IMG/VR virus record: IMGVR_UViG_3300027754_000034
Location: 186,001 to 250,000 of that record
Direction: 5' to 3' (one strand)
Length of the DNA: 64,000 nucleotides
Numbering within the stretch: the stretch's first letter is position 1; each line of letters begins with the position of its first letter. Made by a program: the position numbers and the translations under genes. The notes under the pieces are model-generated. The model was given only the letters and a program-made list of their open reading frames with translations, searched no databases and had not been told where the DNA came from. Of this stretch, positions 9,233-63,294 are shown piece by piece.

Positions 9233-10966
9233 ATGAAAATAAAATCAGGTGAAAAATATGGGGGTTTATTATACGAAGGGCCTGATTATGAAGGAAAGAC
9301 AAGGGATGTAATCGAATTAAAATGTAACTGTGGTAGATTAAAAAAAGTACGTATATATAATCTATTAAATGGATCTACCAAAAGATGTGGATTGTGTAAT
9401 TCTATTACCCTTAAAAAGGGTGATGTATTTGGTAAATTATCCTACTTAGGTCCTACCATTGAATTACCAAAAGGGTCTAAGCGTAAAATTGAGGTTAAAT
9501 GTGATTGTGGTCGTCATAAAGATATTAAGCTAGTAAATTTAATAAATGGACTTAGTACCTCTTGTAATGAGTGTAATCACATTTTACTTAAATCGGGTGA
9601 AAATTATGGAAAGATTAAATATATTGGTTCGGACATTTACATAGGTCGGTCCAGTCATAAAAAGTTATCATTTGAGTGTGAGTGCGGTCGTCTCCATATT
9701 ACTGAACTTCAGTATTTAAATGACACCTCCTCATGCGGCAAGTGTGCTAATGTTATTTTAGAAAATGGTGAAAAGTACGTTAATTTTAAATACTTCGGAG
9801 AGCGTATAGAAATTTCTCCATATAGTAATAAGAAATTATCATTTGAATGTCGTTGCGGCACTATTAAGAATATATCGGTTCAATATATTACTAAAAATCA
9901 AAAGTCGTGCGGAAGTTGCCGAAATCAAGTCTTTGGTTGGTATCAAAATAACGCAGATTTATTGAAAAATGGTGTTCCTATTGATGGTATGTTACCGATT
10001 GGGGGACCAATTGTTTTAGAAAAAATAAAGAATGCGAGTGTTCCATTTTTGGCGCAATGTTGTGTATGTGGTAAGCAGTATAATCCGAGATATAAGGACA
10101 TTAAGCGTGGTCTTTCGTTAACGTGTGGTTGCACTCAAAACAAAACATCTTCATACAGTCTATTAATTTCGGATTACTTAAGTTCCCTAAACATAATTCA
10201 TTTTTTAGAGTATAAAGTTAATGGTTATTTTTACGATGTTTATATACCTTCGGCGAATTTGCTAATAGAAATAAATGGACTCTATTGGCATTCCTCAACT
10301 TTAGTATCTAACCTTGATGCACTTAAATATAAAACCGCATGTGAAGGTAATTATGATTTTATGATGATATATGAAGATGAAATCATAAATAAGTTTAATC
10401 TAGTAAAAGCATTGGTATTTAACCGCATTAAGTCTAAATCTTTCGTCTCTTTAAGACCCTCTCAGTGTGTAATGAAAAGGGTAGATAATCATGGATTAAA
10501 GGAATTACTAAACAACCATCACTATTTAGGTACCTGTACATTTAAGATAGGGTATGGGGTATTTTATGAAGGAATGCTTATAGCAGGCATTACTTTTTCT
10601 AGACCCACCAGGCAATCATCCTATGATTGGGAACTGACTAGGATGGTTAGTGACTCTAAGTATAAAGTACATGGAATATGGAGTAAACTCTGTGGTTTAT
10701 TCATCAGGGAAATAAACCCAAAATCAATGGTTTCATTTTCTGATAATAGACTATTTTCTGGTTTAGTGTATTCGAAGATTGGCTTTAAATATGATGGTAA
10801 TGTTCGCCCTGATTATTATTGGGTAAAAGGGAAAAACAGGTACCATAAATCAAGGCTCAGGAAGAAAAAAGGAGAAGTAGGAACTGAAAATGAGTTAAGA
10901 ATTTCCCAAGGTTATAGAAAAATAATGGACCTTGGCAAGAAGCGTTGGATATTAAATGTAACTTAG
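9233..10966 (+). CDS. Zn-repeat + Vsr/DUF559-like endonuclease + GNAT (Mom-related) fusion, copy A; homing-endonuclease-like
   Basis: Four ~58-aa G..YG.L...CxCG...SCxxC repeats plus a partial fifth; DVYIP..NLLIEINGLYWH nuclease motif; HHYLG...WELTRM...VSFSDNR..GLVY..IGF GNAT-like tail. Confidence 0.7.
   Translation: MKIKSGEKYGGLLYEGPDYEGKTRDVIELKCNCGRLKKVRIYNLLNGSTKRCGLCNSITLKKGDVFGKLSYLGPTIELPKGSKRKIEVKCDCGRHKDIKLVNLINGLSTSCNECNHILLKSGENYGKIKYIGSDIYIGRSSHKKLSFECECGRLHITELQYLNDTSSCGKCANVILENGEKYVNFKYFGERIEISPYSNKKLSFECRCGTIKNISVQYITKNQKSCGSCRNQVFGWYQNNADLLKNGVPIDGMLPIGGPIVLEKIKNASVPFLAQCCVCGKQYNPRYKDIKRGLSLTCGCTQNKTSSYSLLISDYLSSLNIIHFLEYKVNGYFYDVYIPSANLLIEINGLYWHSSTLVSNLDALKYKTACEGNYDFMMIYEDEIINKFNLVKALVFNRIKSKSFVSLRPSQCVMKRVDNHGLKELLNNHHYLGTCTFKIGYGVFYEGMLIAGITFSRPTRQSSYDWELTRMVSDSKYKVHGIWSKLCGLFIREINPKSMVSFSDNRLFSGLVYSKIGFKYDGNVRPDYYWVKGKNRYHKSRLRKKKGEVGTENELRISQGYRKIMDLGKKRWILNVT
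10204..10246 (+). repeat. 43-bp direct repeat, copy 2 (coding, start of the nuclease domain)
   Basis: Encodes LEYKVNGYFYDVYI; 42/43 identical to 9132..9174. Confidence 0.95.
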
Positions 10967-48102: not shown

Positions 48103-49086
48103 ATGAATAAATCATACCTAATGGGGATTGTAACTTGGATATCGGCTGTTTGCTTGGCTGGCTGCCCGTCAGATTTGACTCAAAAGAAAAATGAGCAGGT
48201 TTCCAGATTAAGAATAGTTAATGGTTGCAGTGACCCGATGTGGATTTTCTGGTATAATTCTGAGGGTGGTGGGGACTCGGGTACCCCCAAAAAATTCATA
48301 CTTGATGCTGGCAAACCCTATCTGGATGTGCAAATCCCAGACGCTGGATTTGCTGGTTCACGTTTTTGGCCGGGATATAACTGCGATCCTGAAGGAAACG
48401 GTTGTCAGATAGGACAGAGTGGTGGTCCCGCTAAGTACGGGTTCACTTGTCCTCCTGAGGGTTGTGCTCCACCAGTTGATAGTAAATTCGAGGGTACATT
48501 CGGTTGTTTATCAACTGTCGACCCTTCTTTATGTCAAATAAACCCTTCTGGGGCTCCCGGTCAGCGTTTACCTACCGCTGATTCTTGGGACACTAGTATG
48601 GTGGATGGATATACTCTTCCATATAAAGTTAGGGTGCTAGACGATTGCATTGGTGGTCCTAATAACAACGCGATTGACTGTTCTAATCTTTCGATGTCTT
48701 CTTGTCCCGATAATGAGGATCTTTCTTCTGGCGGTATTCATCCAGAATATTCTAGTATGGAACTAAACGTTAGTAACCCATCGACTGGAAAGAAAGCTGG
48801 ATGTTTTTCTGATTGTGGAAGACTTACTTATAACAATTGGAAGTATGAACCGGGGTTAAATCCGTCAGATTTACCGGCTGTTGATTATTGTTGTCCTGTA
48901 TCGGAGATTAGTCCAGAATCTTGCCGAAAGGGGCCAGTAGCTAACACGAGTTATGTCGATCTTATACATCAACAATGTCCTCAAGTATATGCATACTCCT
49001 ATGATGAAACAAATCCGAGCGGAGCATTGTGGTCCTGCCCAGCCGGGACCAGATATGAAGTGACGTTTTACTGCCCCAATTTTTGA
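48103..49086 (+). CDS. Thaumatin-like (PR-5/GH64-TLP superfamily) lipoprotein
   Basis: LAGC lipobox; IVNGC, FWP..NC, KFE, WDTSMVDGYTLP, DYCC, CPQVYAYSYDE, C.AGTRYEVTFYCP; 18 Cys after the lipobox Cys. Confidence 0.8.
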   Translation: MNKSYLMGIVTWISAVCLAGCPSDLTQKKNEQVSRLRIVNGCSDPMWIFWYNSEGGGDSGTPKKFILDAGKPYLDVQIPDAGFAGSRFWPGYNCDPEGNGCQIGQSGGPAKYGFTCPPEGCAPPVDSKFEGTFGCLSTVDPSLCQINPSGAPGQRLPTADSWDTSMVDGYTLPYKVRVLDDCIGGPNNNAIDCSNLSMSSCPDNEDLSSGGIHPEYSSMELNVSNPSTGKKAGCFSDCGRLTYNNWKYEPGLNPSDLPAVDYCCPVSEISPESCRKGPVANTSYVDLIHQQCPQVYAYSYDETNPSGALWSCPAGTRYEVTFYCPNF

Positions 49087-51332: not shown

Positions 51333-51908
51333 TTACATTACCAATTCAGAAATTTTCTCTATACTGGTATGATCGGGAATCGCTAATCCTCGTTCTAAGT
51401 AATTTTTGATTCCTTCTAATGAATATTCTATCTTATGATCATCATACCACTCTGGTTTTTTAGTGCCTTTATTCCACTTGGCAAATAATTTTTCTCCTTT
51501 ATAATAAGACCGATATGCTACGATTGTGCCTTCATTCCGGTATATAAGAGGCATTACTTGTGGTGGTTTAGTGAATGATGATTCTCCCCATTGAATTCTA
51601 CTCATGTCATTTGATACCCTGTTTAACACAGATAAGCAGGCATGTGTTTTATGGAATCTTTTCGTATACTCTCTTGATATTTCATAGGCATGGGTTAATA
51701 ACCAAGAAAAGTTCCCTTCAGATTTCACTGTCCACCTAGAGCATGGGTGATTTTTCATCAGCAATCTATAAGGCGGGTCTGTTAATTTAAATATGTGATA
51801 TGCATTAGAAAGCATTTGGGCTGATTCTAGCAGCATCTTTGGAATATGTTTATCACATAAATTCTGAGCTGCAATATTTGGATCAAAATCAGTAAAGAAT
51901 ACGTTCAT
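51333..51908 (-). CDS. Pyrimidine-dimer DNA glycosylase/endonuclease V-like protein
   Basis: MNVFF..DP..AAQ..CDKHIPKM.LESAQML...NHPC..W pattern. Confidence 0.7.
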   Translation of the reverse strand: MNVFFTDFDPNIAAQNLCDKHIPKMLLESAQMLSNAYHIFKLTDPPYRLLMKNHPCSRWTVKSEGNFSWLLTHAYEISREYTKRFHKTHACLSVLNRVSNDMSRIQWGESSFTKPPQVMPLIYRNEGTIVAYRSYYKGEKLFAKWNKGTKKPEWYDDHKIEYSLEGIKNYLERGLAIPDHTSIEKISELVM

Positions 51909-51927
51909 TTAAAATATTACATTTTTG

Positions 51928-52464
51928 TTATCTTTTAACGTTTTTAGGAAGTTCCACTAGGTTCTTCCTCCTAAAGGGTAATACCCTATTCCCATCAATT
52001 TCTGTGGGATTTTCCAGTTCCTCCAATTTAGATTGTAAATCCATAGATAGTGTTCTATAATATATAATATATGATATTAATACTAATCCGAGAGATGTGA
52101 TAGCTGCTATCATTAATCGTTCATCTGTAATTCTCGGGAATAAATGTGGATGCTTTTCGGGATTTAATTCGTTTAATAGTCCCTTAGTTAATAGGATTCC
52201 CAACCCTATTCCGGATAAAGAATTGGTTAAAAACGAAATGGCCTTATTCAATGCTTTTTGATTCTTTGATGCAGCTTTCGGGATTGGAATTCCTTTATCA
52301 ACCAAACCTTTATATATTGTAGACGGAGAACTGGATAACTCTATGTTTTTTACGATAAATTCATCCAGTGTAGTAAGTGCTTTATCATTCAATGAATTTA
52401 ATAAATTATCTGCAATATTTTTTACATCAGAGTCATTAATATAGAGAGTCACTAACTTATCCAT
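51928..52464 (-). CDS. Membrane protein with two hydrophobic segments
   Basis: LSGIGLGILL and LMIAAITSLGLVLISYIIYY. Confidence 0.55.
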   Translation of the reverse strand: MDKLVTLYINDSDVKNIADNLLNSLNDKALTTLDEFIVKNIELSSSPSTIYKGLVDKGIPIPKAASKNQKALNKAISFLTNSLSGIGLGILLTKGLLNELNPEKHPHLFPRITDERLMIAAITSLGLVLISYIIYYRTLSMDLQSKLEELENPTEIDGNRVLPFRRKNLVELPKNVKR

Positions 52465-52491: not shown

Positions 52492-53049
52492 TCATGAGAA
52501 TCTACTTGACACCATTCCCCAATCTATATATGGTTTTAAGGCAGTTAAATAACCATTCTTGTCGGTTCCCCAATCCATCCAGTATGCATGTTCCCAAACA
52601 TCAATGACACACAAAGGATTATATCCAAATGCTGCTCCTTCATCATGAGAATTCATGGCGAAAATGCGGAGATTTTTCGAGCCTGGATCTTGTGCTAAAA
52701 CGGCCCATCCCCGACAAGATAGACCCGTCGATTTCATTTGTTCATACAAATTATCCAGAGACCCCCAATGTTCTAGTACATGTTCTACAAACGCACTTTC
52801 GGGCGGTTTTGGTTCCAGAGACAGATTGCTAAAATAAAGAGAATGGAGGTCTGCTCCTCCTACAGCATATCCATGATTACGCAATGACTTGGCTATGTTC
52901 CCGTCTAGGGCATTTTTATTTAGTGAATGTATTGATTTTAGCTCTAAATCTGCTTTCTCAAGCATCTTAATGTAACCATCAAATAACTTTAAATGTTCGC
53001 TTAAAGCTCTCGAAGATGTGGCTCCCGGAAGTTCCGAATATCCTATCAT
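52492..53049 (-). CDS. sod: Fe/Mn superoxide dismutase
   Basis: Metal ligands EHL, LHSLY, DVWEHAY. Confidence 0.88.
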   Translation of the reverse strand: MIGYSELPGATSSRALSEHLKLFDGYIKMLEKADLELKSIHSLNKNALDGNIAKSLRNHGYAVGGADLHSLYFSNLSLEPKPPESAFVEHVLEHWGSLDNLYEQMKSTGLSCRGWAVLAQDPGSKNLRIFAMNSHDEGAAFGYNPLCVIDVWEHAYWMDWGTDKNGYLTALKPYIDWGMVSSRFS

Positions 53050-53072: not shown

Positions 53073-54989
53073 TCATTCTTGTAGTTCTGGATTTGGTACT
53101 TCAGGTTCATCGATTAAATCGGGTTCTGATTGGCCTATTACTACCCATTCATTCAACCCGTTTTTTTCTTCTTCCTCTGTGATGAATTTTAACTTTTTCA
53201 GATTATTCATTACTAAATGGATGAACTTCATTTTAGAATCGGTGACTCTTCCGATTTTATCCCATGATACTGATTTAGGATTTGGAAGCAAAGAAGCCAG
53301 AAGTATGCATTGCGTGAGAGATAAACTGGCCGGGTTCGTATTGAAATATTTCTTGGCTGCGTTCCCGATTCCATATTCACCGGGAGAAAACTCTACTATG
53401 TTTAGATATGTTTCCATAATTTCGTTCTTGGATAATATCTGTTCCAAATGAACAGTAAAAAATGCCTCTTGAATTTTACGTGCCATGGTTTTCTTTCTAT
53501 TCAGCCACAAGTTTTTCGCAGTCTGCATTGAAATCGTGCTACCTCCTCTAATGAATTTATGGGCTTTGATATTTTCAACCATTGAATTCTCGATTGCATT
53601 AATCAGTATGCCTTTATGCTTCATGAATGCTGAATCCTCGGTTCCCATAACAGAAATCGGCATATATTGTGAAATGTTAGAAAGACTAACCCAGTTTGGT
53701 GTTTGTGGACCTGTGACTTCTTCTATTTCTTCTCCTTTACTGTTTATTACTATTCGAGAATACTTGGACATTAGTACATTTCGTGAGTATTTTTTGGGAG
53801 AGCTCACCGAATGGCAGTTATGATTTAGTTTTATACTAACTTGGGGATTTTTGGTTAGTAACGATGTACTGCCAGATATTTGTCCAGCGAATATGAATTC
53901 ATCTAAATTGTCCTTCATGCTGTCTGGCAAGGCTTCTATCAGTGCTTGACATTCGGTTGTATCAAGCACTGTTTTGATTTCAAGGTCTTCACCATTCTTC
54001 TTTAGAATTCCGGAAATGTGGACTTCCCCAATCTTTAGATCGTAATCAAAAGTATCATCTATTTTAGATAGAAATATTTCAACACCGCGTATTTTTATAT
54101 TTGACTTACTTAACTTCTCATTAGACCCATAGATGTAGCTAGATTTAAGAAACATCTTATTGTTCTTTATTTCTATGTTAACGCCTTCCATGTTCGTAAT
54201 TTCTTCTTGATGCTGACTGATTTGAATTGATTCGCAATTCATTGTATGCGACTTATAGTCGCCACTGATGGCATTTATGGAATAACTGTTATATTTAGCT
54301 TTAATCGATTTAAAAGAAAAAGATGGTACTGATTCTAACTGGTTATATATTTTGAGAATGTAGGACTCCATATCTGCTTCCTTTTTATTTTTAGAGTCTC
54401 GGGGTTCGATCTTCCTATCATCCTGATGCTTCAGCTCAAATGATATGTTTCCTAGTGATATCCTTCCGTCTTCATATGCTCCTTTGTCTATTGTAAACGC
54501 ATTATCTCCCTTTACCAAAGACGCATTTGTAAATTTCACATATTTCTCTCCATTCATGTATGATGCCTCTGCAATATCTAACCTAACGTCATACCCGTGG
54601 GATTTAATGTTGGTTCTAATATTATTTAGGTGTAATTCATAAACGCTTCTATGGCTGTCGTATGAATTCTTATTATCCTGGATATGTGTATAGTTTACAT
54701 ACCCATCATTTGCTTTTATTATGTACTGTTCCGGATATACGTAATTAATGTTCAGTGACCGGAAGTTTATGTCTTGGTTTTCCTTAAATATGTGTACCTC
54801 ATGACAGTCAGCACCCATCCACCTCATGCTGCATTCTTGTACTTGAACTGAGTACCCTTTAGATTCTAACTTTTCTATAATTTTGTTTTTTACATATGTT
54901 GGTAAGTATGTAATCGTTGCTGAAAGAATCAAAAATACCATAAAGGAGATTTTGAATTTTAGGTTTTTTATAATTGGAAAAGCATTCAT
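53073..54989 (-). CDS. Monofunctional peptidoglycan glycosyltransferase (GT51) with N-terminal TM anchor and large extension
   Basis: All five GT51 motifs: EDSAFMKHKG, GGSTISMQTAK, RKIQE, KNEIMETYLN, LASLLPNP; ATG 54989 preferred to avoid overlap. Confidence 0.88.
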   Translation of the reverse strand: MNAFPIIKNLKFKISFMVFLILSATITYLPTYVKNKIIEKLESKGYSVQVQECSMRWMGADCHEVHIFKENQDINFRSLNINYVYPEQYIIKANDGYVNYTHIQDNKNSYDSHRSVYELHLNNIRTNIKSHGYDVRLDIAEASYMNGEKYVKFTNASLVKGDNAFTIDKGAYEDGRISLGNISFELKHQDDRKIEPRDSKNKKEADMESYILKIYNQLESVPSFSFKSIKAKYNSYSINAISGDYKSHTMNCESIQISQHQEEITNMEGVNIEIKNNKMFLKSSYIYGSNEKLSKSNIKIRGVEIFLSKIDDTFDYDLKIGEVHISGILKKNGEDLEIKTVLDTTECQALIEALPDSMKDNLDEFIFAGQISGSTSLLTKNPQVSIKLNHNCHSVSSPKKYSRNVLMSKYSRIVINSKGEEIEEVTGPQTPNWVSLSNISQYMPISVMGTEDSAFMKHKGILINAIENSMVENIKAHKFIRGGSTISMQTAKNLWLNRKKTMARKIQEAFFTVHLEQILSKNEIMETYLNIVEFSPGEYGIGNAAKKYFNTNPASLSLTQCILLASLLPNPKSVSWDKIGRVTDSKMKFIHLVMNNLKKLKFITEEEEKNGLNEWVVIGQSEPDLIDEPEVPNPELQE

Positions 54990-55016: not shown

Positions 55017-56003
55017 ATGAGCACTATGTCTTGGAAACGGGGAAATTACATCAAATTCTTTGCTAAGATGAAAATCCGGGTGGGTGGCGGGACCCCGATA
55101 GATATTCAAAGTGGTGATGAATTTGATTATGATGGTTCGATTTTAAGGTACTCAGGTATGGATATCCCATCACCTCAATTAAGAGGGGCAGTAGAAAACG
55201 GTTGGGTAGTACCCGCCAGTTTAGAAGAATCTGGTGACAGGATAGATACCATACGACCCAATCGTAACATAGCAAAAGCCCAAACTGTAAACAAGGACTT
55301 GAGCCGCGTTCAGCGAGCGTCTGGTGCACAATTAACCACTACTACTTTAGACGAAGATGAGGTTCTCAAAGTAGAAGATAGAGGATCCTCCAATAAAAAG
55401 AATCCTAAAGTATTGGTAGGTACAGATAACCGTAAATCCAGGGGAATGGCCGTGTCTAGTGATACGACTGATGCTCAGGAAGCTGTATCAATTGGCAGGG
55501 TTCGCACTAGTGCCAAGGCTGTTTTTAATGACGTTTCGCGTCCTGACTCAATAAAAATAATGCAAGAATTGGAAAATATGAGCGGCGTTAAAGCCGACTT
55601 ATTTAAAGATTCGGTAATTCAAAGAGAAGGGATTACCATTACCACCAATTTAGGTAAAATGAACTCTGTTAGAGAAGCTGATGATGAATCTGGGACAGTG
55701 ATTGCTCAGGTCAGAAATTCTTCCAAGGGATCTTTTGAAGGCATTTCTGTTAAGGACACTAGTGGTATTAGGAATAAGAAGCCCGGCGCTCCTAAGATTT
55801 CTGACCCTCGCTTAAGGGTAGCTCGCGCCATTGATCCTAGCTTCCCCATGGATTGGGCTTTTACTGGTAAGCTCGCTGAACGTTTAGAAAACATTAAGCG
55901 TCATGGGGCTACCGCAGAATTTTTGGAAGCTCTGTATGCGGCAGAGGGTGATCAGATGAGAAAGACGTTGGTCAAGGAATTCCCTGATCAATTTGAAGGA
56001 TGA
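55017..56003 (+). CDS. Putative virion structural protein
   Basis: GGAGG RBS at 55005..55009 supports ATG 55017. Confidence 0.6.
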   Translation: MSTMSWKRGNYIKFFAKMKIRVGGGTPIDIQSGDEFDYDGSILRYSGMDIPSPQLRGAVENGWVVPASLEESGDRIDTIRPNRNIAKAQTVNKDLSRVQRASGAQLTTTTLDEDEVLKVEDRGSSNKKNPKVLVGTDNRKSRGMAVSSDTTDAQEAVSIGRVRTSAKAVFNDVSRPDSIKIMQELENMSGVKADLFKDSVIQREGITITTNLGKMNSVREADDESGTVIAQVRNSSKGSFEGISVKDTSGIRNKKPGAPKISDPRLRVARAIDPSFPMDWAFTGKLAERLENIKRHGATAEFLEALYAAEGDQMRKTLVKEFPDQFEG

Positions 56004-56091
56004 CTTGACTTGATCGAATAAGAATCATGGAGAAGCCCTTAATGGTTACTCCCTGATTCTTATTTGAGGTTATAATTAGAAATATTAATAT

Positions 56092-56421
56092 ATGTCGGCT
56101 ACTATTTACATACAAGAAGAATTGTCTGACGCTAGATTACGTTGTAATGAGTTAAAAAATTATATAGTTAAAGTATTTGACTTAGTTAATGCAAGCGAAA
56201 AGAAGGATCACTTCTACGCAGTAGCTGGCGATTTGATAGAGTCAATACCGAGTACACTTTTGAAATTAGAAAAATCTCTAGACGCCACAGCATTAGCAGT
56301 TAATAAGATAGATTATGAAGAGCTGCGCATGACTCTGCGCCCTGAGAAAGTAGATGAATTAGAAAGAGTACTTGAGGATGTAAGATTGAGAATTCCTCGA
56401 AGGACTGGCCGATTATTTTGA
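56092..56421 (+). CDS. Hypothetical helical protein
   Basis: 109-aa ORF. Confidence 0.6.
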   Translation: MSATIYIQEELSDARLRCNELKNYIVKVFDLVNASEKKDHFYAVAGDLIESIPSTLLKLEKSLDATALAVNKIDYEELRMTLRPEKVDELERVLEDVRLRIPRRTGRLF

Positions 56422-56422
56422 A

Positions 56423-57853
56423 ATGAATGGAGAAAAACTAGCTAAATATTTAGCTACGTTAGAGCCTGGGTATACGAATAAATCCAGAATAACTTATACT
56501 TGTGAGATGTGTGGTATTCAAAATCACATTATTTTAAAATGCTTTAAAGAAAAAATATCTAAGGGCTCGTTATATTGTAAGAAGTGTTCACTGAAGCAGA
56601 AATGGCAAGATGAAGAATATCGATCTAAAATAAAGAAAAGTCAAGAAATAATATGGAATGAAACTGATACGAAAAATAAAATATCGGAAAAAAGCAAGAA
56701 ATTGTGGCAAGATCCCGAATACAAATCTGCTCAGTTAAAAATTCACTCCGACCCCGAATATCTAAAATCAGCTAGAGAACATTCAATAGACAATTGGAAG
56801 AGTGTAGAATTCAGAGAAAACCAACTGAAAACTCGAAATACTCCTGATTTTAAAGCAAAACAGTCACAATCAATGCGTGATTTATGGAATTCTAACAAAT
56901 ATGTAGAAAAAACCCTTCTGTCCTTATCAAAAAAATTCAGTAGTGACTTTAAATCATCGTTAGAGATCATAACATCTAATATTTTAACTGCTCTTAGTAT
57001 TTCATATAAAGAGCAGTATGTAGTAGGACCCTATATTTTTGATTTTTATCTTCCCGATTTTAAAGTATATATTGAATGTCAAGGAGAGTATTGGCATTCA
57101 TTAGAATCTGCTGTTAAGCGTGATGCGAGTAAATCTACTTATCTAAGGAAGGCTCATTCTGATAGTAAGTTTTTGTACTTAAATGAGGTAGATTTCTGCA
57201 ATCCTACTTTAATCAAGCAAAAAATTATTAGTATTTGTGGTTCGACTGCCATAACACAGGTTAAGTCGTTCGAATTAAAAAGTGTAGATATTAAGTTAAT
57301 TAAAAAGGATGATCGGGATTTTAATTTAGCACATAACTTGTTAACTAGTTTTCATTATGCGGGTTTTGGTAGAGCTGCTAAGGTAATATTTGGAGCATAT
57401 AAGGATAAGGAGCTCATAGCCGTATGTAAGTTTTCACCGCCAATAAGACAGGAAGTGGCCACCTCTTTAGGCATTAGTCCTAAAAATATGCTTGAGCTTG
57501 ATAGGTTCTGTATAAAACCAGATAGGCAAATAAAGAATTTTGCTAGTTGGTTTTTATCGAGAGCAGCTAAACTCATTTTTAGTATAGATTCTTCAAAATC
57601 TCACTTGGTGTCTTTTGCTGATAGCACTTACAATCACTTAGGAACTATTTATAAAGCAGCCAATTGGGCGTATGTTGGTGTTGTTTCCCCTGATTATTAC
57701 TACGTTAATGGTCAGGGCTGGATATTACACAAAAAGACATTATATAATCAAGCTGTAAGAAATAAAATGAGGGAGTCTGATTATGCTGAAAAGCATCATT
57801 ATGTAAAAATATACGGAAAAGAAAAATATAAATTTATTCTTGCTAAGTCTTGA
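56423..57853 (+). CDS. Zn ribbon/helical repeats + Vsr/DUF559-like endonuclease + Mom-like GNAT fusion, copy C (intact)
   Basis: CEMC..CKKC; W.D.EY helical repeats; DFYLPDFKVYIECQGEYWH; FHYAG, LELDRFC, VSFADSTYNHLGTIYKAANW. Confidence 0.78.
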   Translation: MNGEKLAKYLATLEPGYTNKSRITYTCEMCGIQNHIILKCFKEKISKGSLYCKKCSLKQKWQDEEYRSKIKKSQEIIWNETDTKNKISEKSKKLWQDPEYKSAQLKIHSDPEYLKSAREHSIDNWKSVEFRENQLKTRNTPDFKAKQSQSMRDLWNSNKYVEKTLLSLSKKFSSDFKSSLEIITSNILTALSISYKEQYVVGPYIFDFYLPDFKVYIECQGEYWHSLESAVKRDASKSTYLRKAHSDSKFLYLNEVDFCNPTLIKQKIISICGSTAITQVKSFELKSVDIKLIKKDDRDFNLAHNLLTSFHYAGFGRAAKVIFGAYKDKELIAVCKFSPPIRQEVATSLGISPKNMLELDRFCIKPDRQIKNFASWFLSRAAKLIFSIDSSKSHLVSFADSTYNHLGTIYKAANWAYVGVVSPDYYYVNGQGWILHKKTLYNQAVRNKMRESDYAEKHHYVKIYGKEKYKFILAKS

Positions 57854-57880
57854 CATTGTTATTTAGCTTTTGATTATAAT
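57850..57880 (+). promoter_or_regulatory. Sigma70-type promoter candidate
   Basis: Perfect TTGACA (57850) and TATAAT (57875) but a 19-bp spacer. Confidence 0.4.
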
Positions 57881-57891
57881 ATGGTTTTGTA

Positions 57892-59025
57892 ATGGATAGT
57901 CATGGGTTTGTATTAACAGAAGCTGCTCAATATGCATTTAAATGTCAGGATGTTTATCCTGACATTTTGTCTTTTGCTGCTGCAATCCCAGAACATCTCA
58001 AGCCGATATTTCTTTTACCCGTTAAGATGGAAGCTATTGTGGCTTCTGAATCTAACTATTTGATAGCTACTCGAATAGCAGCGTGTGCTATGGATGGATC
58101 CACCCCTGAGGGTGATCTTTTTAGTTATCAATCATTCTTATATAATGATATAGAACCTACTATTCCTAATTCATCTCCGGGATCTATTTTCGATATAAGT
58201 GACGCCGATAGTCTTACCCATCATCAAGAGTATAATTTCGATCAAAATATTCAAGTTCCGACTGATACGAGTTATATGTCTGATGTTGATATGACTCAAT
58301 ATTTCAGTTATCCATATAGAACGGTAGAACAGCCCGTAAGAAAATCCTCACTGAACTCCCATCATGTTGCTTTAATCAGATTAGCACTAAATCCGGATTA
58401 TTTGGAAACGAAAACTCCCAGAAAAATAAAGAAAAATGCTGATGAATGCACTGTAATTTTGATAGATTATGATCGGAAGACACGAACTTTTACATTTAAT
58501 GTGGTTTGTGGTAGCGATAAAAAAGTAGTAAAAGCCGCTTTATCTGATGTAAGAAATGTTGTACTGGTTTGCAATTGCGAATTCTGGAGATACAATGGTC
58601 CTGATTACAATGCGAAAACCAACAAATTTTTATTAGGTCCCCCCGTTGGTCGTGCTACTCCCCCAAATATAAGAGATCCTAAGCGACAATATTGGCTTTG
58701 TAAGCATACGTATGCTGTCATAGTTAGATTAGACGATTTCTTGAAGGACATTTCTTCGGAAAATCTAGAACTTGACGAAAAGTCCTTGTTAAATGTAGTA
58801 GATAGGGAGTATGATAGGTTAGCAGAGAAGACTCTAGTTCCTCTTGAAGATGTCGAGCAGGACGTGGAAGTAGATTGGGAGGGATTTGATGGGCAACAAC
58901 AAATCCCTGTTTATTTTGATGAAGATGAGCAGCAACAAACTCCTGTCGATATGGAACAGGATCAACAAGATGTAATCCAACTCACTCAGGATGACGTCCA
59001 ATTTTTACAGCAACAGCAAAAATAA
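57892..59025 (+). CDS. SWIM-type Zn-finger protein with acidic/Gln tail
   Basis: CNCEFW...CKH. Confidence 0.55.
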   Translation: MDSHGFVLTEAAQYAFKCQDVYPDILSFAAAIPEHLKPIFLLPVKMEAIVASESNYLIATRIAACAMDGSTPEGDLFSYQSFLYNDIEPTIPNSSPGSIFDISDADSLTHHQEYNFDQNIQVPTDTSYMSDVDMTQYFSYPYRTVEQPVRKSSLNSHHVALIRLALNPDYLETKTPRKIKKNADECTVILIDYDRKTRTFTFNVVCGSDKKVVKAALSDVRNVVLVCNCEFWRYNGPDYNAKTNKFLLGPPVGRATPPNIRDPKRQYWLCKHTYAVIVRLDDFLKDISSENLELDEKSLLNVVDREYDRLAEKTLVPLEDVEQDVEVDWEGFDGQQQIPVYFDEDEQQQTPVDMEQDQQDVIQLTQDDVQFLQQQQK

Positions 59026-59048
59026 CTCACTACTTTGTAAAGTAGTAT

Positions 59049-59453
59049 ATGCCTACATATAGTTATAAGTGCACTTCTGATTCATGTGAAAATGTTCAGG
59101 AGTGTGTAGCTTCCATGAAAGAATATAATGTAATCACTCCAGCATGTAAAGAGTGTGGTAGTTTATGTAATTATTTCTATGTGCCTTCGGTTCCCTTGGT
59201 TTCATTTTTGGACGGTCCTTCGGGCAGTTGGCCATCAAAGGGAAATCGGTTCAAAAAGCACCGAGAAAAGTCTGCTGAAGCCGCTAGCCTAAGGCAAAGA
59301 GATAGATATGGTGCAGTGGGCGGGGCTGTCCCGAATTTTCAAGGTAAAGATACGGGTACTTGGGCAGAAGCTCAATTTCAGGCTATGAAAGAAAAAGGTG
59401 TGGAAAGTGCTGCTACATATAATGATAAGGTAAAATCCGAAAAGACGAAGTAA
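59049..59453 (+). CDS. FmdB-like zinc-ribbon protein with C-terminal extension
   Basis: MPTYSYKC..DSC...CKECG. Confidence 0.7.
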   Translation: MPTYSYKCTSDSCENVQECVASMKEYNVITPACKECGSLCNYFYVPSVPLVSFLDGPSGSWPSKGNRFKKHREKSAEAASLRQRDRYGAVGGAVPNFQGKDTGTWAEAQFQAMKEKGVESAATYNDKVKSEKTK

Positions 59454-59486
59454 CTATTGGTCTTTTATTCAGTCGTCTACATTAAG

Positions 59487-60128
59487 ATGCCGAGAGTATT
59501 TTCTTTAAATCGTCGCAGGAAAAATCTTTTAGATATAGTCATTTCTTCAAAATCTGACGTCGGATCATATCAATTCGCGGTATCAGATAATTTTGATGGA
59601 ATGTTTTCGGATTTTCAAGTAGTGCCCAAGGCGGGATACCGTTCTAAAGGTGTAGTAGAAGGATCTCAGTCTTATTCGGGGTTTAGAGGGTTAACCAGAT
59701 TCCTTCTAAATCCAGAAGACTACGTGATGTCTTTCCCGGACCTGGATGATACAAAGCCTTTTTGGATTACTGTATCCGAAATTCCTTATGGAGGAGCTGC
59801 TGGCGCTCCTAGTGCACCCCATTTGGTGTTGCCATATAACACCACCCCTAATCTAGGCTTTAATATTTCGGGAAGCGTTTCTGCTACGGTTACTGAAATA
59901 CAATTACCACAATTAGTTTCTAATATTGTAATAGATGTAGTGGGTCCAGATGGTTTAAATTTGGCCTATGAGGAAAATGGAACCGTATTTACTATCCCAC
60001 TAAATGCGGGTCTTGACGTTGAGTATTGGTCAACATTCCACACAACCGGACAGTTATTCTTGTCTAGTACTGGAATGGACACAGAATTCAGTGCTGCTTT
60101 CCGACTGATGAACAGTTTAGCCTTATAA
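59487..60128 (+). CDS. Putative structural protein
   Basis: Beta-rich ORF; ATG 59487 preferred. Confidence 0.5.
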   Translation: MPRVFSLNRRRKNLLDIVISSKSDVGSYQFAVSDNFDGMFSDFQVVPKAGYRSKGVVEGSQSYSGFRGLTRFLLNPEDYVMSFPDLDDTKPFWITVSEIPYGGAAGAPSAPHLVLPYNTTPNLGFNISGSVSATVTEIQLPQLVSNIVIDVVGPDGLNLAYEENGTVFTIPLNAGLDVEYWSTFHTTGQLFLSSTGMDTEFSAAFRLMNSLAL

Positions 60129-60157
60129 TACTTTACCAAAATTGGTAGGAGATTTCA

Positions 60158-60712
60158 ATGCCCCTGATTTACATAAGAGTTGTTAATGAACAAGTCATTG
60201 ACCGGTCACTTTTAATAGATAAAATTGACAAGAGCCAGGGGAACTTTGAAGGTTATGCTCAGCGTGCAAAACAGGCTGTTTATATCCCTTACGTAAATCC
60301 GGATGATACTTCTGTAAAGGGGTATTTAAATCTGGTACCTACGGATGAAGTCCTGTTGGCGGCAAATAATGGATCTATAAAGGGTCTTTCAGACGCTAAC
60401 TACATTACTTTCTCTCCTGTAGACGCTTTAGCGATTGCGAAAAGCGTGGTTGTGGCTGCGGCCAACGACGTCATGAACAACTGGACTGACGTGGATGGCT
60501 TGACTTTTACATCTGTTTACCCAGATGACACTCGTCTCCAATTGAAGAATATGGGTGGAACGGTCCAGACAATTACTTCAGGGGACTTTGCAGTGTTTAC
60601 CGGTATAGCTATCCGTGTGTTGGATGCAGTAGTAACTATTGGCGTTCCAGCAGCAGGGTGGCAAGTGAGAGTCCAGGCTAATTCGCTATTTAGCGAGTGG
60701 TTCACTCTCTGA
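60158..60712 (+). CDS. Putative structural protein
   Basis: GGAG RBS, biased codons. Confidence 0.55.
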   Translation: MPLIYIRVVNEQVIDRSLLIDKIDKSQGNFEGYAQRAKQAVYIPYVNPDDTSVKGYLNLVPTDEVLLAANNGSIKGLSDANYITFSPVDALAIAKSVVVAAANDVMNNWTDVDGLTFTSVYPDDTRLQLKNMGGTVQTITSGDFAVFTGIAIRVLDAVVTIGVPAAGWQVRVQANSLFSEWFTL

Positions 60713-60742
60713 TAAGACTTTAGAATAAAGAGGAGCAAACAA

Positions 60743-61543
60743 ATGCGAGTCGGTGCTATCAGAACGGACATTCAAAAGGTTTACTTAGCGGACATTGAGA
60801 ATCGCGCTCAGCGTTGCTTCTCTAGCGAGCCGCCAGGGCAGTCTCGTTATCTCGAAAAGCCGTCAGATGACGACTTTAAGAGCGTGTTAGATACGTACGC
60901 GTTTTTGTCGCTGTACGGGTCTAACAATGCGGCTACGGTCAACACGACTGGTGGAAATAACGTTTTTAAGGTTCGCGTTTCAGCGACAGCTGCCTACACG
61001 ACCATTAACGTTACCTCGAATGCTGCTTTAGCTAAAGCTACGATCCGTAATGAGTTGAATGCAGGATTTGAATCTGCCAGCCTTCCGCTAGTTGCTCGTT
61101 TAGTGGGCAATCGCATCATCGTAGATTCAAATGGATCAAATTCCGGTCCGGCTGCTTACATTGGGGTTGATGTTGGTGGCAATTCAACACTCAATCCGAT
61201 AGTGGGCTTCACGGCTGGTGCACTCTCTGGGTTATCAGTTACTGCTCTTAAAGCGGCAGTATATGCTGGTGGTACAGTAGATGTTTCGAGCGCCACTATT
61301 TTGGCTCTTTCTACTTTTACCCGTTTGCTTGCTGCAGCTCAGGATGCACTAGTCGGCGGTATAGCAGACTTGGCAGCACCAAGTCTCATTGAGACCGGTC
61401 CCGTTCTCTTGTCCTTCGTTTATGGTAATCTCTCTAAGTACAACTCGGCTGATTTCCAGCCGGGTGGAGACAGAGCAGGTTTAACTGCTGGTGCGGCTGT
61501 TGTCTGCTTAGAAGACGACGGTTCTACTCTTTTCTCAGTCTGA
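60743..61543 (+). CDS. Putative structural protein
   Basis: GAGGAG RBS, Ala/Gly-rich, biased codons, hairpin downstream. Confidence 0.55.
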   Translation: MRVGAIRTDIQKVYLADIENRAQRCFSSEPPGQSRYLEKPSDDDFKSVLDTYAFLSLYGSNNAATVNTTGGNNVFKVRVSATAAYTTINVTSNAALAKATIRNELNAGFESASLPLVARLVGNRIIVDSNGSNSGPAAYIGVDVGGNSTLNPIVGFTAGALSGLSVTALKAAVYAGGTVDVSSATILALSTFTRLLAAAQDALVGGIADLAAPSLIETGPVLLSFVYGNLSKYNSADFQPGGDRAGLTAGAAVVCLEDDGSTLFSV

Positions 61544-61557
61544 GAGAGCGTAGTATT

Positions 61558-61596
61558 TTATGCCTACCCAGGGTGTGAATCCCCGGGTAGGCATAA
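61558..61596 (+). terminator. Hairpin after the 60743 gene
   Basis: ttatgcctaccc...gggtaggcataa. Confidence 0.6.
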
Positions 61597-61640
61597 TCGT
61601 ATTAGTGGTTCGATGAGTATTGTGTGTTGGAAAATTTAAA

Positions 61641-61874
61641 ATGGAACAAGAAGAATTAGAAACTCATGACATTTATTTGGCGGCTTATCTTAGCATCGCG
61701 GGTTGTGCGCTTAAACGCAGATATCGAACTGGTCCCAGGGTTTATTTTGTATTTGTAAATCCTGCAGGTTCTATAAATGAACTACGTGAATCGTATTATG
61801 CTGGTAGCGCGACTGTAAAAGCCCATGACTTCTCACAAAAAGTGATCGGGATGAAGAATCTTTGCTTTGAATGA
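61641..61874 (+). CDS. Small phage protein, DUF5659-like
   Basis: ETHDIYLAAYL...G...VYFVF pattern. Confidence 0.5.
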   Translation: MEQEELETHDIYLAAYLSIAGCALKRRYRTGPRVYFVFVNPAGSINELRESYYAGSATVKAHDFSQKVIGMKNLCFE

Positions 61875-61878
61875 GTGA

Positions 61879-62172
61879 TTATTGACTTGCTATTTGCCGC
61901 AATTTTTTTGGTTTAGATTCGAATATTCCACTATCTAGGTGGGTGGATTCAGCTTTTCCCTGCATCTCGTCTTTTTTGTCACGTATCATATTTGCTAAAT
62001 AACCGAGGTTTTCCGTTATTTCAAGTTCTTTAGGTGCAGTCAGTACTCTATGAATTTTATCTAATATTTCGATTAAGTTCTCAGAATACCAAAATTCTTT
62101 ATTCTTAGGTATTCCTGACCAATTGAGTTCCTCGATGCCAGCTATTCTGAAGGAGATTTTTCTCAGATTCAT
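61879..62172 (-). CDS. Small protein with MNLRKISFRIA leader
   Basis: ATG 62172 gives a leader matching other virion-type proteins. Confidence 0.55.
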   Translation of the reverse strand: MNLRKISFRIAGIEELNWSGIPKNKEFWYSENLIEILDKIHRVLTAPKELEITENLGYLANMIRDKKDEMQGKAESTHLDSGIFESKPKKLRQIASQ

Positions 62173-62225
62173 AATTCTTGCTCTATTCAAGAGCCTTTAT
62201 TAGATTACTAATAATTAATTCAATT

Positions 62226-62609
62226 ATGAGCCGTTTAGTGTCTAGTGGTGTTATAATATACGATCAGATAGTAATAGTTGATCCTCTGAATTCTCAGGAT
62301 AGAGTACTGGATGTCTTAGTCGGTGATTTATCTTTAAATCTTTTTGTTAACAATGTGAAATATAACTGGGATATCTTAGATGGATCATCAGTATTAGATT
62401 CAAATATCTCTCCTGGGAGTATTTATTTTAATGAAATTAGTGGATCCCCGGGTTTTTATTCTGTAAGATTCTATCCTGATAAAACTGGCTATTGGTATAC
62501 ATCTTACGTATATAGTGTAAACTCGCTTGAAATTGTTAGGGATTATGATTTAGTACCAAGAAATTTCTTCGGGTCTTCTTCTTCTGGCATAGTCGCCAGC
62601 TTTACTTGA
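62226..62609 (+). CDS. Putative structural protein
   Basis: Beta-rich; ATG 62226 preferred. Confidence 0.5.
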   Translation: MSRLVSSGVIIYDQIVIVDPLNSQDRVLDVLVGDLSLNLFVNNVKYNWDILDGSSVLDSNISPGSIYFNEISGSPGFYSVRFYPDKTGYWYTSYVYSVNSLEIVRDYDLVPRNFFGSSSSGIVASFT

Positions 62610-62610
62610 T

Positions 62611-63294
62611 ATGACCGTAGTTTATAAGAATCAGCAGCTTAGTGTAGGCGAGATAAGCTTGCAGCTACAGAATGCTGAAGGGCAAATCATTAATGTCAAT
62701 TCCGTCACATACTCTATTTATGCGTTAGATGGGAAATTAGTTTCGGGAAAATCTTTACCAGCCATTTTGGCTGTTGATGGAAAATACTATATTCCTTGGG
62801 AATCCAATATACCAAATGGTACTTATAAAATTTTGTGGGAAATCAATACAAATGGCATCCAGATAGAAATCAAAGAATCATATATTTTTGTGTTAGATAA
62901 GGCGGCTTATCCTAAATCTCCTTCAAGTGTCTGTTGTATTCTGCCTTCTAGTATACCTAATCCATTATCAAAAGTCTTTATATCAGGAACAACATTAGGT
63001 CCTGAAGATTTAAATATGTACTTGAACGATTCAATAACAGGTCTTTTCATCGACCCTTATTCAATATATTGGACGATATTTAACTGTCGCGGTTGTATCG
63101 AAACCCGGAAAACTGTTGGGTCTAAATACGCTGTTGGTAAATTTTACGCCCCGTACACCGTAATGGGTCCGACTGCTGAATATGATATAGTATGGGAATT
63201 TAAAGAGAATGTGAATTCACCTCTGATGTCAAAAACTCAGAGATTCTCAGTGTTAAATACTACAAACCTAAAATTTAAAGAGTGTGACTGTTAA
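62611..63294 (+). CDS. Putative structural protein (duplicated Ig-like domain)
   Basis: Two similar halves ending G.Y.I.WE. Confidence 0.5.
   Translation: MTVVYKNQQLSVGEISLQLQNAEGQIINVNSVTYSIYALDGKLVSGKSLPAILAVDGKYYIPWESNIPNGTYKILWEINTNGIQIEIKESYIFVLDKAAYPKSPSSVCCILPSSIPNPLSKVFISGTTLGPEDLNMYLNDSITGLFIDPYSIYWTIFNCRGCIETRKTVGSKYAVGKFYAPYTVMGPTAEYDIVWEFKENVNSPLMSKTQRFSVLNTTNLKFKECDC

Follow-up and report, generated by a model that had tools for sequence, protein, structure and literature searches.

Gene content of the locus

The stretch of DNA analysed here, referred to as the window, comprises 64,000 nucleotides and lies at 186-250 kb of a 257-kb viral contig of a very large, uncultured freshwater phage. 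On its minus strand, positions 53073-54989 hold an open reading frame without internal stops, which encodes a protein of 638 aa (P0002) from the ATG at 54989. This start is supported by the closest homologue (P0004), which begins at the same position, while the IMG gene call starts 16 residues later. The protein consists of an N-terminal membrane anchor, an all-beta domain of approximately 350 aa and a C-terminal GT51 peptidoglycan glycosyltransferase domain.

The gene stands at the head of a same-strand run. A Fe/Mn superoxide dismutase gene (52492-53049, minus strand; PF02777, E = 1.8e-20) follows 23 bp downstream, and the same GT51-SOD pairing occurs in a related 312-kb contig; co-transcription is inferred. 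Two further minus-strand genes, located at 51333-52464, encode an unknown protein of 178 aa and a denV-like pyrimidine-dimer glycosylase (PF03013, E = 7.3e-05 for 51333-51908); a homologue is found in L002 (L numbers denote individual loci or contigs of this study). On the plus strand, a GH24 phage lysozyme (50281-50982; PF00959, E = 1.4e-36) represents the putative endolysin and shows a weak C-terminal peptidoglycan-binding hit below the cut-off (PF01471, E = 0.0067). It lies 2.1 kb from the GT51 gene, but this spacing is not conserved, being about 10 kb in the 312-kb contig.

On the other side, a divergently transcribed block of conserved huge-phage genes of unknown function extends from 55017 to 63294 (plus strand), with a probable start at ATG 55017 after a GGAGG. 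A Mom-family gene at 56423-57853 sits among them but is found in only about 5 relatives. Searches of the block against Pfam and PHROGs and an Atlas feature search returned no informative match, and the AF2 model of the 328-aa neighbour was poor (pLDDT 61, mostly disordered). Promoter and terminator scans did not exceed shuffled expectation.

The GT51 domain

The catalytic domain (53154-53735, minus strand; aa 419-612) matches Pfam PF00912 (Transgly) with E = 7.7e-48 and 162.7 bits against a cut-off of 27, covering aa 419-578 and model positions 2-161 of 178; the genome search gave 165.8 bits. It aligns without gaps to the GT domain of Aquifex aeolicus PBP1a (2oqo). The AF2 model of the protein (pLDDT 85.8, pTM 0.73), with pLDDT mostly 84-97 over this domain, shows the lysozyme-like two-lobed GT51 fold, with TM scores of 0.83-0.85 to 3nb6, 2oqo and 3d3h (0.85 for 3nb6 and 2oqo) and Z scores of 19.1-19.7 to 3vmq, 3hzs and 2oqo (19.7 for MtgA 3vmq).

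Motifs 1 to 4 are intact and read EDSAFMKHKG, GGSTISMQ, RKIQE and KNEIMETYLN. The residues E451, D452, F455, H458, G460, G482, S484, T485, Q489, R504, K505, E508, K521, Y528 and N530 are all present, and they are invariant or nearly so in the alignment of 48 viral and 70 bacterial relatives. The codon of the catalytic Glu E451 (motif 1, EDxxFxxHxG; 53637-53639, minus strand) is GAG; this residue is invariant in the 48 viral, 70 bacterial and 8 class A PBP rows and aligns with the catalytic Glu of the Aquifex GT domain. The second conserved Glu, E508 (motif 3, RKxxE; 53466-53468, minus strand), is likewise encoded by GAG and invariant in all rows. Motif 5 (RRxxVL) is degenerate: the aligned positions read KFIHLVM, and these columns vary throughout the family. 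Motif 5 is the least conserved GT51 motif, and thus its degeneration does not exclude activity.

No transpeptidase domain was found in the protein, and no PF00905, PF01098 or PF03734 anywhere in the 257-kb contig, i.e., no phage transpeptidase, SEDS protein or L,D-transpeptidase. No regulatory domain resembling UB2H or OB was detected either. The protein stays below the NCBIfam equivalog cut-off for MtgA (TIGR02070; 155.8 against 182.65 bits) and far below that for class A PBPs (TIGR02074; 162.6 against 508.75 bits).

Anchor, predicted beta stalk and neck

The membrane anchor (54894-54950, minus strand; aa 14-32) is a hydrophobic stretch, ISFMVFLILSATITYLPTY, inside a model helix spanning aa 10-43. 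A hydrophobic 19-mer near the N-terminus occurs in 42 of 48 viral and 63 of 70 bacterial relatives, and in the structural alignment the anchor matches the TM and first repeats of LPD-3.

The all-beta domain (53802-54851, minus strand; aa 47-396) carries a disordered loop at aa 190-219 and comprises about 19 strands over aa 47-346. Its predicted fold is that of AsmA-like or bridge-like lipid-transfer proteins: structural alignment gave LPD-3 (9cap; Z 12.4, over residues 4-303), the Vps13 N-terminus (6cbc; Z 10.1), TamB (9xdd; Z 9.1) and Atg2 (6a9e; Z 8.3), and Foldseek returned LPD-3, TamB and LptD, with probability 1.00 for LPD-3 and TamB. At the sequence level, the window protein gives no hit to a member of the AsmA-like clan even at E <= 1, whereas 9 of 31 aligned homologues hit DUF748 (best 2.8e-05), 3 hit AsmA and 2 hit YhdP; YdbH hits also occur among family members, and precomputed DUF748 or AsmA hits appear on more distant relatives. 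A word search with the N-terminal 420 aa alone returned only the protein itself, so this domain diverges too fast for such a search. The strands are only weakly amphipathic (mean 0.73 against -0.97 on the Kyte-Doolittle scale), which does not favour a strongly hydrophobic lipid groove. Between stalk and GT51 domain, a neck (53814-53951, minus strand) holds the cysteines C347 and C392, present in 45 of 48 and 48 of 48 viral copies, respectively, compared to 30-42 of 70 bacterial sequences; a periplasmic disulfide is inferred.

Phage residence of the gene

It had been set as a refuting condition that the gene might prove to be flanking host DNA, and this is contradicted by our data. The window carries TerL, portal and protease genes, and phage hallmark genes lie on both sides of the GT51 gene. 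Using tblastn, the divergent block is found in the same order next to GT51 in about 17 loci with GC contents of 0.39-0.68, one of them from a complete 436-kb genome with terminal repeats. Related TerL sequences (43-60% identity) occur in 5 of 5 tested GT51-bearing contigs of 436-619 kb, two of them with terminal repeats. GC and GC3 match those of the phage's other genes, and an identical copy sits on a second contig from another sample (L008). The gene is, however, accessory: only 4 of 27 TerL-related large contigs and 3 of 10 near-complete ones carry it.

Relatives, phylogeny and selection

A total of 55 IMG/VR contigs, mostly of 110-620 kb, carry the architecture, with ORFs of 540-730 aa. 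At least 597 bacterial genomes (Myxococcota, Bacteroidota, Bdellovibrionota, Chlorobiota) hold relatives; in the 80 loci kept, these are long proteins, mostly of 640-850 aa, with an N-terminal extension before a C-terminal GT51. In a tree rooted on class A PBPs, 46 of 48 viral rows form one clade (SH-aLRT 93), sister to Polyangiaceae (90). An AU test did not reject a single clade for all 48 viral copies (p = 0.066), and thus a single origin is neither shown nor excluded for the two outliers, L057 and L058. The nearest ESM Atlas clusters are Myxococcota Transgly(+DUF748) proteins. Selection is purifying, with dN/dS of about 0.03 in the GT domain and about 0.15-0.17 in the stalk (0.03 and 0.165 for L032 versus L034).

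A near-identity DNA search of the window against cultured phages found nothing, and PHROGs gave only a family of unknown function for the protein. A tblastn search of INPHARED gave 57 hits, none covering 80% or more of the protein. The only annotated jumbo-phage hit, MaAM05 'mtgA', lies among secDF, glyS, fabI, engB and fliM and is therefore mislabelled bacterial DNA; H1 is an unverified faecal contig with a 653-aa ORF, the size of the Bacteroidota forms. A search with the GT domain alone gave ordinary MtgAs plus short forms, which on inspection are split copies of the same two-part gene (L224 and L225) rather than a separate short phage GT51. The conserved gene neighbours of the bacterial homologues show only lineage-level synteny and give no functional hint. 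Among sequencing runs, only the source DNA metagenome was found to hold the sequence, and no RNA run does.

Interpretation

The initial annotation had described a phage peptidoglycan polymerase with a TM anchor, a large beta-rich extension, all five GT51 motifs, no transpeptidase domain and a GH24 endolysin about 2 kb away. This description holds, although counting all five motifs was slightly generous. Its proposal that the phage builds or reinforces the host wall in opposition to its own lysozyme is only partly supported: the gene is a phage gene, and by sequence and fold it is an intact monofunctional GT51, motif 5 excepted, under purifying selection, but neither wall building nor any of the suggested purposes (lysis delay, larger cells for a bigger burst, repair of the injection lesion, superinfection exclusion) is shown. 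It had missed the predicted fold of the beta extension, the widespread bacterial family, captured essentially once by a huge-phage lineage as far as the tree resolves this, the accessory nature of the gene and the fact that proximity to the endolysin is not conserved.

What our analysis establishes is a resident gene of an uncultured huge phage, encoding an N-terminally anchored protein in which a beta domain with a predicted AsmA-like or bridge-like fold carries a monofunctional GT51 domain at its far end, an architecture that forms a distinct, uncharacterised bacterial family, with nearly all phage copies in one clade next to Polyangiaceae sequences. Enzymatic activity, mechanism and purpose, in contrast, are inferred from sequence and predicted structure alone. 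In our view, the protein would be inserted into the inner membrane of a diderm host during infection, with stalk and GT51 in the periplasm, as the anchor and the conserved Cys pair suggest. There it would polymerise host lipid II into glycan strands independently of the host's regulated synthases, cross-linking being left to host transpeptidases because the phage contig encodes none. Least certain is the purpose, namely that the sacculus of the infected cell is kept being made or patched through a long huge-phage infection; this fits the neighbouring superoxide dismutase and UV-repair glycosylase genes, which are also host-maintenance functions. We assign this reading a probability of roughly 0.55. 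Several points speak against it: expression and biochemical evidence are lacking, the patchy distribution shows that the gene is not needed for the huge-phage lifestyle as such, motif 5 is degenerate and the MtgA cut-off is not reached. Furthermore, in known GT51 enzymes the TM helix directly precedes the catalytic domain, while here 400 residues intervene, which leaves access to membrane-embedded lipid II unexplained, and glycan made without a coupled transpeptidase could harm the wall rather than help it.

Other readings appear less likely. An active enzyme could serve as a lipid II sink, diverting lipid II and undecaprenyl phosphate into uncross-linked strands and thus starving host division, elongation or surface-polysaccharide synthesis, with a division block, larger cells or a wall weakened ahead of lysis as possible outcomes, by analogy with single-gene lysis proteins that target MraY, MurA or MurJ and with the futile cycle caused by beta-lactams. 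The monofunctional GT51, the absence of a phage transpeptidase, SEDS protein or L,D-transpeptidase and of detectable regulatory domains, and the nearby lysozyme gene would agree with this. However, a toxic sink is unlikely for what is a normal chromosomal gene in hundreds of bacteria, the phage already has a canonical GH24 lysozyme, and the neighbouring genes are protective rather than lytic; we consider this reading unlikely. Somewhat more doubtful is superinfection exclusion or envelope remodelling, in which the wall is thickened or altered, or the enzyme works with phage-encoded sugar-modifying enzymes, so that later phages cannot penetrate, by analogy with the coating of infected cells by chlorovirus hyaluronan and chitin synthases. 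In relatives, the gene borders islands rich in glycosyltransferases, epimerases and methyltransferases, and it is patchy, as exclusion genes often are, but these islands differ between phages, with only GT51 constant, and no exclusion system is known to use GT51.

A virion or ejected protein, whose anchor and stalk are delivered with the DNA and help to span the periplasm while the lysozyme-like GT51 fold acts on the wall at entry, is improbable. The adjacent conserved block may be structural, one of its products is largely disordered like internal or scaffold proteins, and the GT51 fold resembles lysozymes. On the other hand, the polymerase-specific residues are shared with chromosomal bacterial homologues, which are ordinary cellular genes, the gene is transcribed away from that block, and no hydrolytic GT51 is known. 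Host DNA, an assembly artefact or a decaying passenger gene is already contradicted by synteny, the second contig, GC3 and dN/dS, even though IMG/VR calls the contig 'linear' and about 60% complete, many 'phage' records with GT51 hits are really bacterial DNA and split copies exist. A further, speculative and rather unlikely possibility is that the stalk is a working lipid conduit, lifting lipid II or the undecaprenyl-linked growing strand out of the inner membrane to a GT51 held several nanometres above it, at the level of the sacculus. If true, this would be a previously unrecognised way of making peptidoglycan, used by Myxococcota and Bacteroidota and captured by a lineage of huge phages to build wall on infected cells independently of the host's elongasome, divisome and lipoprotein activators.

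Phages are known for destroying peptidoglycan. A conserved, selectively maintained peptidoglycan polymerase in a lineage of 250-620-kb phages would be an auxiliary function of the opposite kind, with the virus investing in the host's wall. We found no literature on a phage GT51 and no paper describing the relatives in other huge phages; a 2012 CAZy survey found GT51 in 0 of 103 viruses (PMC3541169), and the huge-phage survey of 2020 does not mention peptidoglycan. The finding also points to an unstudied bacterial family in hundreds of Myxococcota, Bacteroidota and Bdellovibrionota genomes, on which we likewise found no paper, and its geometry challenges the rule that the GT51 domain sits directly on its TM helix.

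Comparison with known systems

MtgA (structures 3vmq, 3hzs) is likewise a membrane-anchored protein with a single GT51 domain and no transpeptidase, and it shares both catalytic Glu residues, motifs 1-4 and the fold (Z 19.5-19.7). It is, however, only about 240 aa long, with the TM helix directly before the GT domain, whereas the protein described here is phage-encoded, has a stalk of about 400 aa in between and a degenerate motif 5, and belongs to a family with its own signature (M488 for Q, and E533 for P). Class A PBPs, e.g., Aquifex aeolicus PBP1a and E. coli PBP1b, provide the best sequence and structure match for the catalytic domain (2oqo; E = 7.4e-26, TM 0.85), but here the transpeptidase and the UB2H or OB domains are missing and the extra domain is N-terminal to GT51 rather than C-terminal.

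With AsmA-like and bridge-like lipid-transfer proteins (TamB, YhdP, AsmA, DUF748; eukaryotic LPD-3/BLTP1, Vps13, Atg2) the protein shares an N-terminal TM helix leading into a long single beta-sheet domain (Z 8-12). This domain is much shorter (about 350 aa against more than 1200), presumably too short to span a periplasm, and ends in an enzyme instead of an outer-membrane docking region; lipid transfer remains hypothetical. Chlorovirus hyaluronan and chitin synthases and phage auxiliary host-maintenance genes are analogous in that a virus carries a polymerase for a host-type extracellular polymer, or a gene that sustains host physiology during infection, although enzyme family, substrate and host domain all differ. 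The uncharacterised bacterial 'hypothetical protein, Transgly (+DUF748)' family of Myxococcota and Bacteroidota has the same overall architecture, the same family-specific residues and a shared neck region. Its members are cellular genes, and the viral clade is separate and keeps the Cys347/Cys392 pair more strictly, but these proteins are the true nearest relatives and the likely source of the phage gene.

Gene structure and domain architecture

The frame at window 53073-54989 on the minus strand is uninterrupted and yields a protein of 638 aa from the ATG at 54989. A longer, TTG-initiated frame of 678 aa would overlap the divergent neighbour, and the closest homologue, P0004 (46% identity over 100% of the query), starts at the position of the ATG. 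Pfam places a Transgly (GT51) domain at aa 419-578 with E 7.7e-48 and finds nothing else in the protein. A phmmer search against PDB sequences aligns aa 426-608 without gaps through the catalytic core to the glycosyltransferase domain of Aquifex aeolicus PBP1a. An AlphaFold2 model built on 31 family members is confident (mean pLDDT 85.8, pTM 0.73) and shows four parts, namely a helix at 10-43, an all-beta region at 47-396 with one disordered loop at 190-219, a short neck, and a helical domain at about 427-612.

Integrity of the GT51 domain

The residues of four motifs are present: E451, D452, F455, H458 and G460 (motif 1), G482, S484, T485 and Q489 (motif 2), R504, K505 and E508 (motif 3), and K521, Y528 and N530 (motif 4). 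They are invariant or nearly so in 48 viral and 70 bacterial relatives as well as in 8 class A PBP outgroups. Motif 5, in contrast, is not recognisable in this protein or its family, and hence the statement of the initial annotation that all five GT51 motifs are present has to be reduced to four clear ones. With this correction, its observation is confirmed. The family has a signature of its own, with M488 where PBPs have Q, and an invariant E533 where PBPs mostly have P. The fold matches GT51 structures strongly, with TM 0.85 to 3nb6 and 2oqo and Z 19.7 to S. aureus MtgA 3vmq. There is no transpeptidase domain in the protein, and the 257-kb contig has no match to PF00905, SEDS (PF01098) or YkuD (PF03734).

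Phage residence of the gene

The window comprises bases 186001-250000 of an IMG/VR viral contig of 257,205 bp. It encodes ribonucleotide reductase, an exonuclease V/Dda-type helicase, large terminase, portal and a head-maturation protease. Mom-family DNA-modification genes lie on both sides. These two fusions are located at window 56423-57853 (+) and 9233-10966 (+); one is joined to a restriction-endonuclease-like region and a zinc ribbon, the other to an HNH or homing-endonuclease region. A 327-aa protein at window 48103-49086 (+) matches the Thaumatin family (PF00314, E 4e-15, 56.5 bits against a cut-off of 27.4), which is an unusual family for a phage. One of the seven tRNAs of the contig, located outside the window at 153497-153571 of the contig, has the anticodon TCA. 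It is labelled SeC by ARAGORN and could be an opal suppressor; since the ORFs in the window read normally under table 11, no recoding was assumed.

The GT51 gene is transcribed divergently from a block of about nine genes (window 55017-63294, +). By tblastn, this block is found in the same order and orientation, directly beside the GT51 gene, in about 17 other large viral contigs whose GC ranges from 0.39 to 0.68. One 109-aa product of the block reaches 75% identity. Apart from a weak zinc-ribbon hit, none of the conserved genes has a Pfam, PHROG or Atlas match, and the AF2 model of the first gene's product is mostly disordered.

Five GT51-bearing contigs of 436-619 kb all encode a TerL 43-60% identical to that of the window. 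Two of them have direct terminal repeats and thus are complete genomes, and in one complete genome the GT51 gene lies more than 100 kb from either end. The GC (0.35) and GC3 (0.354) of the gene fall within the range of the phage's other genes, and an identical copy lies on a second contig from another sample (L008). That the gene is flanking host DNA had been named beforehand as a finding that would overturn the phage interpretation, and this objection fails. The nearest database TerL belongs to an uncultured 485-kb phage (41.6% identity), and the nearest cultured one is that of Tunturiibacter phage Tunturi_5 at 27%. The lineage has no close cultured member. The only sequencing run found to contain the locus is a freshwater DNA metagenome, probably the source.

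A predicted AsmA-like stalk

The region described in the initial annotation as a beta-rich extension was compared with known structures in an exhaustive search with VIA-align 2. The N-terminal part aligns with LPD-3/BLTP1 (Z 12.4, covering residues 4-303 and including the TM helix), the Vps13 N-terminal fragment (Z 10.1), TamB (Z 9.1) and Atg2 (Z 8.3). Foldseek independently lists LPD-3, TamB and LptD. The protein itself gives no Pfam hit in this part, but 9 of 31 aligned homologues hit DUF748, 3 hit AsmA and 2 hit YhdP, and more distant relatives carry precomputed DUF748 or AsmA annotations.

The domain is therefore predicted to be an AsmA-like / bridge-like lipid-transfer-type beta sheet that begins at a membrane anchor, as in TamB, YhdP and LPD-3. 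Two cautions apply, as it comprises only about 350 aa, roughly a quarter of TamB, and the alternation of hydrophobic and polar residues along its strands is weak. In the neck, a cysteine pair is conserved, with C347 kept in 45 and C392 in 48 of 48 viral copies. This would fit a periplasmic disulfide, which is an inference.

Relatives and origin

A word-based protein search found a family of proteins of about 610-660 aa with C-terminal GT51, several of them on contigs of 200-330 kb. A pattern scan of IMG/VR returned 55 viral loci, most from contigs of 110-620 kb, each with a frame of 540-730 aa and a long N-terminal extension. The same scan of one genome per prokaryotic species yielded at least 597 confirmed relatives. 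The best are Polyangiaceae and other Myxococcota (about 770-850 aa), followed by Bacteroidota (about 640-680 aa), Oligoflexales/Bdellovibrionota and Chlorobiota, and the set includes isolates such as Polyangium jinanense, Phocaeicola, Flavobacterium and Hymenobacter. A Bacteroidota-type copy sits among ordinary housekeeping genes. The nearest ESM Atlas structure clusters are Myxococcota proteins annotated as hypothetical protein, Transgly (+DUF748).

A maximum-likelihood tree was built from 126 sequences (C-terminal 320 aa, LG+C20, rooted on class A PBPs). It places 46 of 48 viral sequences in one clade (SH-aLRT 93), sister to a Polyangiaceae clade (90). The two exceptions are one contig whose copy nests among other Myxococcota and one long branch; an AU test does not reject a single clade for all 48 (p 0.066). 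The simplest reading is one old capture from a Myxococcota-like bacterium, followed by descent within huge phages and amelioration to hosts of very different GC. Support values are moderate, and thus the donor is a suggestion.

Short forms found in a search with the GT domain alone turned out to be split copies of the two-part gene. In one phage contig and one bacterial contig (L224 4940-6885; L225 4698-6987), the stalk and the GT51 part are called as two overlapping ORFs, which could be due to a frameshift, a sequencing error or a genuine split. The annotated mtgA of the 274-kb record 'Microcystis phage MaAM05' (MW495066.1, examined at 108-128 kb) lies among secDF, glyS, gatD, engB, fabI and fliM, and this stretch is therefore bacterial DNA. 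Several other INPHARED records with GT51 hits look like host contigs too.

Selection and distribution

Two independent viral pairs were close enough for comparison. For the contigs L032 and L034 (dS about 1.08), dN/dS is 0.03 in the GT domain and 0.165 in the stalk. For L039 and L050 it is 0.15 in the stalk, while dS is saturated in the GT domain and no ratio could be computed there. Both domains are therefore maintained. The gene is not universal in the lineage: of 27 large contigs that share the TerL type of the window, 4 carry a GT51, and of the 10 that are at least 90% complete, 3 do. It is a recurrent accessory gene, not a core gene.

Genomic surroundings

Downstream on the same strand, 23 bp away, lies an Fe/Mn superoxide dismutase gene (window 52492-53049, -), of which only the C-terminal domain gives a hit (E 1.8e-20). 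It is followed by a 178-aa unknown and a denV-like pyrimidine-dimer DNA glycosylase (window 51333-51908, -; PF03013, just above cut-off). The GT51-SOD pair recurs in a 312-kb relative. In other relatives, the downstream side holds different cargo, either a polysaccharide-synthesis cluster or a two-component system. Clusters of glycosyltransferases, sugar epimerases/dehydratases and methyltransferases border the GT51 gene in the relatives L003 (11931-20208), L224 (6845-10445) and L002 (14445-15500) and represent phage-encoded polysaccharide-modification islands. A 310-330-kb relative (L006/L007, 12980-15490 and 18124-20181) carries a histidine kinase with two response regulators next to GT51, as well as a 685-aa protein with a weak Cas12f/TnpB-type hit. 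GT51 therefore marks the border between a conserved block and a variable accessory island.

The GH24 lysozyme, which has a weak PG-binding hit, lies 2.1 kb away on the other strand. The initial annotation had pointed to this proximity, but in the 312-kb relative the distance is about 10 kb, and so it is not a conserved feature. Promoter and terminator scans gave nothing above chance. The divergent neighbour probably starts at ATG 55017 behind a GGAGG, whereas the GT51 start has no obvious Shine-Dalgarno sequence.

Possible mechanism and role

What our analysis establishes is an intact, conserved, membrane-anchored GT51 domain, joined to a stalk that is AsmA-like by its predicted fold and encoded by a phage. 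Its activity is inferred from established GT51 biochemistry: it would polymerise lipid II into glycan strands in the periplasm of a diderm host. AsmA-like proteins are a diderm feature, and all bacterial holders found are diderms. Because no transpeptidase comes with it, incorporation into the wall would depend on host transpeptidases. The interpretation given in the initial annotation is thus supported in part, since the enzyme and its phage residence hold, while the purpose assigned to it does not yet.

We favour a host-maintenance role, in which wall synthesis or repair is kept going during a long infection, independent of host regulation. This is mainly because the cellular homologues are ordinary chromosomal genes and because the co-oriented neighbours are protective enzymes, which is weak evidence. 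The protein may instead act as a lipid II / undecaprenyl phosphate sink that arrests division or primes lysis, it may serve superinfection exclusion through wall remodelling, or, less likely, it may be a virion or ejected protein. The geometry adds a further difficulty, as it is unexplained how a GT51 domain separated from its anchor by 400 residues would reach membrane-bound lipid II. Either the domain folds back onto the membrane, or the stalk hands the substrate up; the latter would be the most novel mechanism, but we consider it unlikely on present evidence.

Relation to known systems

Full-text searches, which were limited to open-access papers and preprints and thus do not prove novelty, found no paper describing a phage GT51 or an AsmA/DUF748-GT51 fusion. 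Two jumbo-phage reviews mention only lytic or tRNA/DNA transglycosylases, and the huge-phage survey of 2020 has no occurrence of peptidoglycan-related terms. A CAZy-based survey reported GT51 in 0 of 103 viruses (PMC3541169). Compared with what has been described, the enzyme family itself is known, but it is found here in an uncharacterised architecture and in an apparently unreported genomic setting, and it is widespread among huge phages.
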